Notes: generated by a model not told the origin, from the sequence alone. Shown: positions 21,201 to 24,200, counted from the stretch's first letter. The stretch is 64,000 bases of DNA from Macrostomum lignano (GCA_002269645.1 NIVC01002580.1:1-64000), one strand, 5' to 3'. Translations and numbers: made by a program.

Positions 21201-24200
21201 GAGATGAGGAGAGAGGAGAGTAGAGAGGAGATTAGAGAGAAGAGCGCTGAGAAGAGATGTACAATAGCTCGTAAACATTGAGCGGGCTGAATTGCTATTG
21301 TGAAGTTTCTAAAGACCCGAGGGCTGGATAGAGAGACTTTGCGGGCCGGGGTTTGCCAACCGCTGGCCTAGTGGATCAATATCCTGGCGAAATTGACATT
21401 CGATGTGTGGAATCGAGTGAAAAAAGTAACCATTTTTTATATTGAGTTGACACATCTAAGTGTCTTTAGGATCTGTGACATAAACATCGGATATTTATCT
21501 AAGTTCAAAGCTAAGTAAAACAGTAAAACAAATTCATAATTCTTATAGAGCTGTCTTTTTTCGTTAAGATGTGACAGTTGTCTATAAACTCTATTGAAAA
21601 ATTTCAAGATATAACATGTACAAAAAGTTTGATAAGACTAATGTACAACAACCACTGTCACAAATGCTAAAGTTCAACAGATTCTGTCAAAATCGACTGC
21701 ATCAAGACCAGCAAACTTGTATAAAATTTGGATTGAACAAATAAAAATTGCAAAAGCAACCGTATAGAGGATTTCTTGAAGAAGCTACTTTAAGACAGGC
21801 GGTAGCTTCTTGGATTGCAGAGACAGCAAGGTGGCCCTATCTATTTTCTTAAGATCCGTGTTCAAAACCAAAGTCGGCATGCAGAAGGTCCTGATAGTGG
21901 CTATGTATTAATCAAGATTTACTCTGATTTATTATACAGTTGATCAACAATCAATAATTCGGACGCTAGTTAGTTTCCGCGTCAGCTATTTCTCGCGAGA
22001 GCATTTAAACAAACGTTGGAAAAGATTGAGAGATTGTAGAGATCGCAGTGCTCAACAACTTACACCTCAACTCGTTCCACCTTCACCCCCCAGGGGTCCG
22101 TGGCATCGTCGAGTGACTCCTGCGTGGCGGGTGGCAGTGCGCGGCGTACGGTACAGAGACCGAGTATTTGCAACAAACTCGCAGCAGTGCTTCATCAACG
22201 ACTAGCACGGAACAACAGCTAATAAATAGCATTGAAAAGCACTATATGTTTGGCTTGTGTATACTTTACAAAAAAAGAAAGTGGGGAGATTGAAAACGGA
22301 TTGTTTATGCCACAAGGCCAAGGTGAGCGACAGCGCAGCACACTGCGTGTATGCGGTGGCGGCTGGGTGGTTGGGGACTTACACCTCAACTCGCTCAACC
22401 TTGACACCCCATGGATCCGTAGCGTCATCCAGCATGTTCTAGAAATTTGATTGATGGCAATCGTGGACGGTAGATGTACAATACACGGAACTGAGAGAAT
22501 GGGGACTATGAAGGCATTGGCGTGAGAGACTCGCAGGAAGACAGGAAAGCTAAAAGCAACTCATGACGCCCAATAAGTCTAGTGAAGTGTCAGTAAGGAC
22601 TAACAAAGATTTCTTGGTCATACCTTCTCAAAGTGACCAGCTCATTAAAACGCAGCTTGTAAACTACCACAGGCTTTGATTCCACTTAAAAAACTTTTTG
22701 AAAGTCTAATTGCAGTGATTGTGGGAGTACTAATTACGGCATCTGTACAAGCCAAAGTACTTTTTGAGAACAATGTCACTGCTTGCGGAAATATTGTCTG
22801 CCAGGAAGGTTGCTTTTGGAAGACCCTACGGAAATATCGATTGAATCTTTGGAATTTTTTGATCCCTGATGATATGATTGTGGCAATTTGCATATACATG
22901 TATTTTCAGAGTCAAAATTTGCGTGTATAATTATGCTGATAAAATCCTTGATGTTGCATTAAGAGACTCCTAGATCGGATCTATTGAACTCACCTGCATC
23001 ATGTTGCTGATGCTCTCTCGTTCGGATAGAATCTCCGACAGATTCTTTGTGCCCAGCACGTTTCTAAGAGTGGTGGCGGCCAGCAACCGAGTAGATCTGT
23101 CAGCGTCTTCAACGTTAGTGACAGCGATGACTGGATTGTAGATGCGGTAGTACACCACGGCGTCTACGGCCACCGTCACGGAGTCTTTGGTGAGCACCTG
23201 GGGGAAGGCAGCGCGAGCAGCTGTTTTTTAGGCATTTTGCGGGGCAGAACTTACTGAGGGTGTCTGGTGGCAGGGTCTGATATAGTCATACTGGTTGTCA
23301 GGCCATTATGGTAAAGAGTCGTTAGGTTGCTACAATAGAGAGTGAGGTCATCAAGAAATCCATTTGTCATGGTAATGGATCATCGGAGTATTGAGTCGTC
23401 AGGGTATTTTTGGTCATCGGGTATTGGGTCATCGGGGTATTAGATCATTGGGATATTGGGTCATCGGGTATCGAGTCATGGGGTTTTGGGTTCATTAGGA
23501 TATTGGGTACATCGGGGTATTCGGTCATCGGGGTATTGTGTCATCGGGTTGCATTGGGTCATCGGCTATTGAGTCATCGGAGTATTGGGTCATCGGGTAT
23601 TGGGTCATCGGTTATAGAGTCATCGGGGTATTATTGGGCCTCCAGGATCAGGAATCCTTAGCAGCAATCACCAGAAAAAAGTGAAATCTCAGAAAAAGTT
23701 AAGTAATACAGTTTGATTTCTTTACAAAAGTACAAAAGCATATTATCCCGAATGACTAGCAGCTGAAGGGTATTAGAAACGGCACACGTGTGAAATGACA
23801 ATATATAAAAGCACGCACACGCAGAATCGGTGCCGGGACGGGTGAATAATTAGCAAAACATACGTTAGAAACAGAAAACGGCAATGTTTATTGAGTCTAT
23901 TGTTGAATAGCGGACATTGGCATCAGATGGCATGTATAGATGGACAGGAATCCCATTTTAAGTTTGTTTAGTTACTAATCAAAATATACAGAGCGTAATA
24001 CCCACTGAAGCAGAGAACGGAATGAAAATGGTATTGGAAGAACTTGGCAAGAAGGTCAAAAAGGTCCATTCTTGGTGAAGAGTGGGACAAGAAGGCCGCG
24101 ATGGACGGGACAAGAAGGCCACAAGAAGACCGTGATGGATGGGACAAGAAGGCCACAAGAAGACCATGATGGACGGGACAAGAAGACCACAAGAAGGCCG

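Follow-up and report, generated by a model that had tools for sequence, protein, structure and literature searches.

Does a stomatin gene of the flatworm Macrostomum lignano choose between two near-copies of a single coding exon, and could that choice matter to the protein? The question is posed by a 64,000-nucleotide (nt) stretch of the genome assembly (GCA_002269645.1, NIVC01002580.1:1-64000), all of which we call the window. Its minus strand carries the stomatin gene BOX15_Mlig004665g1. An original prediction, made from the sequence alone, held that two 56-nt exons inside the SPFH domain of this gene form a tandem-duplicated, mutually exclusive pair. Having recomputed the gene structure and compared it with paralogues, homologues and known systems, we consider it quite probable that the two exons are indeed tandem-duplicated, mutually exclusive coding exons of a stomatin/MEC-2-like gene.

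Anatomy of the exon pair

Read on the minus strand and recomputed, the two exons (here 4a and 4b) are equal in length and in phase (phase 0 to 2), and they are separated by an intron:

22383..22438, minus strand: exon 4a (A-type), read from 22438 to 22383, 56 nt, sequence AACATGCTGGATGACGCTACGGATCCATGGGGTGTCAAGGTTGAGCGAGTTGAGGT; acceptor ttctAG, donor GTAAGT; 18 full codons plus GT, two bases of a Val codon; starts with NM
22120..22382, minus strand: intron between 4a and 4b, 263 nt, GT-AG
22064..22119, minus strand: exon 4b (B-type), read from 22119 to 22064, 56 nt, sequence GAGTCACTCGACGATGCCACGGACCCCTGGGGGGTGAAGGTGGAACGAGTTGAGGT; acceptor acgcAG, donor GTAAGT; 18 full codons plus GT, two bases of a Val codon; starts with ES

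The copies are identical at 41 of 56 nt, and 16 of their 18 full codons encode identical residues. Ten of the 15 differences are silent third-position changes in codons 3–18, and the remaining five fall in codons 1–2, where exon 4a encodes Asn-Met (NM) and exon 4b Glu-Ser (ES). When 10 substitutions were placed at random in codons 3–18, the peptide was preserved in 0 of 200,000 simulations, so chance does not explain the silent pattern. The two 56-nt exons lying 263 nt apart, their acceptors, GTAAGT donors and phase were all reproduced as originally predicted, and the tally of silent and replacement differences came out the same on recomputation.

Because 56 is 3n+2, inclusion of both exons or skipping of both shifts the reading frame, and the translations run into early stops, in agreement with what had been proposed; inclusion of 4a or 4b singly preserves the open reading frame (ORF), and each resulting coding sequence (CDS) equals a database protein. 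The flanking junctions lie at 22994 (e3 side) and 16939 (e5 side), the positions that the original prediction gave. The junction sequences are as follows:

e3 to 4a (at 22994/22438): AACATGATGCAG joined to AACATGCTGGAT
e3 to 4b: AACATGATGCAG joined to GAGTCACTCGAC
4a to e5: GAGCGAGTTGAGGT joined to AAAAGACGTC
4b to e5: GAACGAGTTGAGGT joined to AAAAGACGTC
4a to 4b (double inclusion): GAGCGAGTTGAGGT joined to GAGTCACTCGAC
e3 to e5 (double skip): ATGATGCAG joined to AAAAGACGTC

Together with one of 4a or 4b, six exons make up a 286-codon frame in which all introns are GT-AG:

30514..30577, minus strand: e0, first coding exon, found by tblastn; ATG at 30577; encodes MHSAAMQQRDAPPATGPLSDP plus 1 nt; donor GTGAGA
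30272..30381, minus strand: e1; QQRDTKG and the hydrophobic hairpin, which was aligned to the human stomatin hairpin
29405..29560, minus strand: e2; part of SPFH1; ends DVPPQE
22994..23197, minus strand: e3; VLTKDSV...ESISNMMQ; ends in phase 0; donor GTGAGT
16861..16939, minus strand: e5; starts with the base that completes the Val codon
15274..15465, minus strand: e6, last coding exon; ends LAHFMHKS; stop TAA

Spliced with exon 4b, the CDS translates into a protein identical to GenBank PAA58009.1 (P0001), the ES form; spliced with exon 4a, it yields one identical to UniProt A0A1I8HZJ1 (P0002), the NM form, also from M. lignano. Both isoforms are already public gene models, drawn from different annotations and never described as a pair. 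The top database matches of the window protein are M. lignano proteins. It contains a Band_7/SPFH domain (Pfam PF01145 match at 4e-39), and residues 18-280, the hairpin included, align without gaps to the human stomatin chains of solved structures (E = 3e-121). The PF01145 match, the N-terminal hairpin and the collinearity with stomatin place it in the stomatin subfamily of the SPFH/Band 7 proteins.

Constraint on both copies across paralogues

We compared the window locus (W) with four other loci of the M. lignano assembly (L001, L002, L003 and L007), which provide both a very recent and a much older view of the pair. At L007, the window locus has been duplicated recently, and the two are 96.5-98.6% identical with introns included; both of its exons are identical to those of the window and the splice sites of its 4a are intact, but the comparison says little about selection because local intron divergence is only ~1%. 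L002 and L003 are near-identical copies (synonymous divergence, dS, 0.016) of an old paralogue that stands at dS ~0.9 and a nonsynonymous divergence (dN) of 0.036 from the window gene. They hold the pair in the same order: an A-type exon (AM; acceptor ttctAG), 102 nt of intron and a B-type exon (ES; acceptor tcgcAG). L001 is a third old paralogue (dS ~1.0) that carries an A-type exon (NM) only, and W, L001 and L002 are mutually old (dS 0.9-1.1, dN 0.02-0.04). Either the B exon was lost from L001, or the L001 lineage had already diverged when the duplication occurred; the branching order of the three paralogues cannot be read from dS.

Between W and L002, the B-type exon shows nine silent and no replacement differences, an outcome reached by chance in 0 of 200,000 simulations (the simple product is ~0.23^9, roughly 2e-6, with 12.3 silent sites in 54). 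Exon 4a shows 12 silent and no replacement differences between W and L001, and five silent differences plus the change of N to A between W and L002. The introns around the pair in W and L002 are unalignable beyond ~11 nt upstream of the B-type exon, and the 263-nt intron between 4a and 4b in the window is not conserved with its 102-nt counterpart in L002/L003. Translation of both exons in both genes would lead one to expect just this, silent changes only, in each of four exon copies and in two long-separated lineages. We regard this as strong evidence that both are translated, and both copies have been held by purifying selection on their coding capacity. The claim that selection maintains the two copies is thus backed by the same-order pair in L002/L003, the silent-only divergence of the ES exon and the unalignable introns around it.

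Transcript-derived GenBank models use the ES exon at both the window locus and L007, and the A-type exon at L002/L003 and at L001. The isoforms appear to have been partitioned among paralogues after gene duplication, with ES at W and L007, AM at L002/L003 and no B exon in L001. This series offers a compact case of splice isoforms apparently partitioned after duplication, in which the dominant exon differs between paralogues.

Position in the protein and possible effect

The two 286-residue isoforms are identical except at residues 179-180, Asn-Met versus Glu-Ser. In the gapless alignment these residues correspond to S176/T177 of human stomatin, and the whole exon to human residues 176-194, a numbering confirmed by the Leu178, Thr182 and Val197 that PMC3433786 names. 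Within the SPFH domain, the duplicated segment supplies the C-terminal half of helix alpha4 and leads into the beta-strand that follows; an AlphaFold (AF2) model has the helix at 170-188 (block pLDDT 92 and 87) and the strand at 190-201, with pLDDT ~90. Across 144 distinct homologue segments, exon positions 1-2 are the most variable (~2.95 bits versus at most 1.3 elsewhere), and, if positions -3 and -2 are added, the variable sites follow an i, i+1, i+4, i+5 pattern that is typical of an exposed helix face. The switched residues lie on the side of alpha4 that faces the solvent, and L178, T182 and D183 come directly after them.

The hydrophobic pocket of stomatin, needed for its effect on ASIC channels, is formed by F101, Y124, V126, I136, L178 and T182; the mutation T182W, which closes it, abolishes modulation of ASIC2a/3 (PMC3433786). 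The human hexadecamer has a state in which a salt bridge links D183 to R14, a residue of the N-terminal loop, and F19 inserts into a pocket between SPFH1 and SPFH2 (bioRxiv 10.1101/2025.08.30.673307). L181 and T185 of the flatworm protein (human L178 and T182) are invariant in a 52-sequence alignment, and the pocket and strand residues are identical in the 4a and 4b products. Replacing Asn-Met by Glu-Ser makes the surface at the pocket rim more negative by one charge and takes a hydrophobic side chain away from it, leaving the pocket and strand residues untouched. Most likely, the exchange would act as a subtle change in surface charge and hydrophobicity at the rim, tuning contacts with partners, with the N-terminal loop or within the oligomer without altering the fold. 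The ES dipeptide is constant between old paralogues, and the first A-type residue has drifted between N and A, a weak hint that the difference matters.

Stomatin-family proteins tune mechanosensory and acid-sensing channels. A natural two-residue variant pair, kept by selection beside a required hydrophobic pocket, could be used to probe that surface in an animal for which transgenesis is available.

The same exon in other species

In Schistosoma mekongi, Clonorchis sinensis and Spirometra sp., only one copy of the exon was found, even at very low stringency. In all three parasitic flatworms that copy is 56 nt long, has the same boundaries and is of the TM or AM type. Some gastropod stomatin/MEC-2-like genes resemble that of M. 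lignano, in that their tandem duplication involves exactly this 56-nt exon, identical in boundaries and phase. The original prediction had proposed a search for the doublet in related species; a pair of this exon occurs in some gastropods and was not found in the three parasites.

Among the 120 best full-length homologues, isoforms within a species differ in this exon only in the gastropod Babylonia areolata, where the RefSeq isoforms X1 and X2 differ solely there (a 19-residue peptide versus TSLDECTDPWGIRVERVEI). The two 56-nt exons of its locus (L008) lie at 52308-52363 and 56688-56743, 4.3 kb apart, and a Haliotis cracherodii locus (L009) has the same two exon types at 90426-90481 and 91240-91295, 0.8 kb apart. 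The Haliotis locus also holds a third, degenerate copy at 91443-91498, which lacks splice sites. A Candidula unifasciata model (P0274) uses the Cys-type variant exon, and the Biomphalaria locus has a single copy.

The gastropod variant exon is a conserved LDECTDPWGIRVERVE-I form that carries A181C, V187I, K188R and V194I and lies upstream of the canonical copy, whereas the flatworm variant lies downstream of it and differs only at positions 176/177. The gastropod variant and the flatworm ES exon have no derived residue in common. This, the placement on opposite sides of the canonical copy and the single copies in the parasites and in Biomphalaria suggest that the duplications in gastropods and in the flatworm were probably independent; silent sites are saturated at this distance. 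A joint reading, which we offer tentatively and think rather less likely than its negation, is that the SPFH exon became mutually exclusive independently in macrostomids and gastropods, making it a recurrent hot spot for isoforms with different partner or oligomer specificity, and that the ES and xM forms took on cell-type-specific roles that were later partitioned. If so, the ES and xM forms would have distinct roles, for example in ciliated or mechanosensory cells.

Weighing the alternatives

Several points weigh against the view that the window gene uses both exons as alternatives. GenBank gives one isoform per locus, and the NM form is a UniProt model. In L001, nothing resembling a B-type exon was found in a 3.4-kb intron free of gaps, which means that at least one gene copy can do without the ES exon. 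Exons 4a and 4b of L002 are identical over nt 13-45, and partial gene conversion between the exons may have inflated the apparent conservation of their 3' two-thirds. Finally, the switched residues are the least conserved in the exon, so the two proteins might be equivalent.

The last of these points underlies the alternative that survives best, in which both exons are used, the NM/ES difference is neutral and the pair persists through its splicing-regulatory context, such as tissue-specific output or regulated unproductive splicing. We consider this possible, if doubtful. It is favored by the low constraint on the differing residues throughout the family, by the i, i+1, i+4, i+5 spacing that puts them on an exposed helix face and by the identity of all pocket and strand residues in the two copies. 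However, ES is identical in the window and L002/L003 across dS ~0.9, a span over which the first A-type position changed from N to A; few homologues have E at position 1 (9 of 144 segments); and the duplicated exon of gastropods has fixed, conserved replacements (the four listed above), an argument that changes to the protein within this exon can matter.

Alternatively, only one copy might be functional at this locus: ES alone would be used, 4a would be a relic kept by slow mutation or by conversion from 4b, and the isoforms would be divided among genes, with ES here, AM at L002/L003 and NM at L001. The one-sided exon usage of the GenBank models at all of these loci and the complete lack of a B exon in L001 fit this account, as do the signs of conversion, namely codon 7, which reads ACG in both window exons and ACA in all three paralogue exons, and the shared nt 13-45 of L002. 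Yet the AG and GTAAGT of exon 4a are intact in the window, L007 and L002/L003, and when the five exon sequences are aligned, at least three 4a changes specific to the window lineage (GCT, ACG and GTT) are all silent. The copies that look unused (4b in L002/L003 and 4a in the window) are conserved at the protein level across dS ~0.9, and the conserved stretch includes the type-specific first 12 nt, which conversion from the other copy could not supply.

Nor do single models speak clearly for single use. The GenBank BOX15 models were built from StringTie, TACO and de novo transcripts with TACO --isoform-frac 0.75 (PMC5730564), and because this isoform-fraction filter discards minor isoforms, a single, presumably dominant, isoform would be listed per locus even if both were made. 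A model of the NM form does exist (P0002). A protein cluster look-up for five M. lignano proteins returned single-member clusters and no further isoforms, and a 70-residue query around the exon, in a search that seems to limit matches by length, hit short unrelated fragments but not a single Macrostomum transcript. With one isoform given per locus in current M. lignano annotations, an alternative exon is easily missed. On balance, we judge use of a single copy to be improbable.

An artefact of assembly or haplotype collapse, which might be suspected in so redundant and repeat-rich an assembly (PMC5730564; TRF) and which the original prediction had itself named as a risk, can be set aside almost entirely, because the pair is present on four separate contigs (one contig pair 96.5-98.6% identical, the other being the old paralogue) and its copies differ at 15 of 56 nt, with unrelated flanks and no N gaps. 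The reading that we favor is still that of a mutually exclusive pair with both copies in use.

How exclusive use could be enforced

For such a pair, an mRNA encoding the full protein would contain exactly one of the two 56-nt exons. Two of the usual means of enforcement are excluded. Steric hindrance by a short intron does not apply, as the intervening intron measures 263 nt here and 102 nt in L002/L003, and the gene's own e0-e1 intron has 132 nt; nor does U2/U12 incompatibility, as every intron is of the U2 type, bounded by GT and AG and with a donor resembling GTAAGT or GTGAGT.

Competing RNA pairing was sought with an inverted-repeat scan and with RNAduplex against dinucleotide shuffles, and nothing significant was found in the window. 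Intron 3 (22817-22832) can pair with exon 4a (22416-22431) at 14/16 positions, no more than chance would give, and a pairing of exon 4a with the upstream intron in L002 (z = -3.2) is not common to the paralogues. An Rfam scan found no RNA gene in the exon-pair region. Separately, L002 has a 30-nt minisatellite at 31180-31620, ~130 nt upstream of its exon 4a, that is absent from the window gene. The repeat unit contains CCTTGACCCTCTC, the complement of the GAGAGGGTCGAGG with which exon 4b ends at its 3' side, and could mask the 4b donor, although a chance match is plausible (rough p ~0.03).

With steric and U2/U12 mechanisms excluded and no convincing pairing found, the frame rule is what remains. 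Under it, mRNAs with double inclusion or double skipping would be removed by nonsense-mediated decay (NMD), and the choice of exon would be set by trans-acting splicing regulators. There is precedent in Caenorhabditis elegans, where reliance on NMD was shown for 14 of 19 mutually exclusive clusters of non-3n length (PMC4165533).

Surroundings of the gene and further observations

Beyond the stomatin exons, the window contains the following features:

18001-19057, plus strand, within ~17883-19911: frameshifted remnant of a piggyBac-type transposase (Pfam DDE_Tnp_1_7, zf-Tnp_2)
27456-27531, plus strand, e2-e3 intron: weak tRNA-Leu(CAG)-like element (Rfam tRNA, 33 bits; ARAGORN)
~17516-17710, 4b-e5 intron: sequence related to the tRNA-Leu(CAG)-like element, with an ORF containing the ESNPRP motif found there too
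~3972-10090, minus strand: downstream neighbour with large exons, a CEP290-like coiled-coil protein (Pfam CEP209_CC5)
15720-16617, 20184-20880, 24087-25342, 28489-29096, 34775-36255 and 44845-46794: examples of tandem repeats

The piggyBac-type remnant, oriented against the stomatin gene, sits in the intron of 5.1 kb that follows exon 4b, and the absence of ~2 kb at this place from L007 points to a recent insertion or a deletion difference. The tRNA-like element and its relative may be copies of a tRNA-derived short interspersed nuclear element. The CEP290-like neighbour is also annotated beside the duplicate locus L007. Tandem repeats are very dense, with 36 TRF rows for the 64 kb. Three introns of the stomatin gene contain long (TCTG)n arrays, and there are also a minisatellite with 37 copies of a 34-nt unit and numerous arrays built of 20-23-nt units; such arrays account for most of the long spurious ORFs in the window.

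Some further observations concern gene models of the family. P0004 and P0005 are annotated with different first coding exons in the near-identical paralogue copies L002 and L003, and both loci hold an unannotated exon, MHAAAMRSREKPPATGPLSDPS (in L002, at 25993-26061), that is homologous to the first exon of the window gene, a hint that genes of this family use alternative promoters or alternative first exons. Two UniProt models of paralogues derived from WormBase-ParaSite are mis-spliced: in P0032, e3 runs into the intron (NMMQASAQEF) and exon 4 is skipped, and in P0013 the last exon is partly frameshifted. In other animals (rotifers, nematodes, oyster and butterfly), the stomatin models P0006, P0008, P0018, P0023, P0024 and P0088 contain identical or near-identical internal repeat blocks, one to three exons' worth in length. 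These blocks may be artefacts of assembly or annotation, or tandem exon duplications wrongly included twice.

Comparison with known systems

In sodium channels, the alternative exons 5N and 5A of a pair are set apart by just one or two residues. Homologous mutually exclusive exons of equal length that preserve the frame are well described (PMC4165533, PMC5740500, PMC6071210), and in its splicing arrangement the stomatin gene would be a further instance of this common class. The tandem mutually exclusive exons catalogued in C. elegans (PMC4165533) and in human (PMC5740500) are likewise adjacent, homologous and equal in length and phase. Like the stomatin pair, the catalogued pairs allow one exon per frame, and they share with it a length that is not a multiple of three, premature stops on mis-splicing and a small difference in the protein. 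Unlike the pair described here, no sto-, mec-2 or unc-1 gene is listed in the C. elegans census (PMC4165533), and our literature search found no paper on a mutually exclusive or tandem-duplicated exon in a stomatin-family gene.

By name, the nearest member of the family is C. elegans mec-2, which has MEC-8-dependent long and short isoforms and a cassette exon (PMC8934639). Its isoforms, with distinct neuronal functions, show that splicing of a stomatin gene can matter; the mec-2 events, however, affect the C-terminal part or a cassette exon and not a duplicated SPFH exon. Mammalian stomatin, known from mouse structures (4FVF/4FVG/4FVJ) and from human hexadecamers solved by cryo-electron microscopy (for example, 9OH9), aligns to the flatworm protein without gaps, and the residues corresponding to its L178, T182 and D183 lie within the duplicated exon and are identical in both flatworm copies. 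Unlike in the flatworm, no alternative exon has been described at this position in mammals. Overall, RefSeq already annotates such a pair for a gastropod, and public protein databases already contain the two flatworm isoforms; the main addition made here is that this particular SPFH exon was probably duplicated more than once and that its isoforms seem to have been shared out among paralogues.

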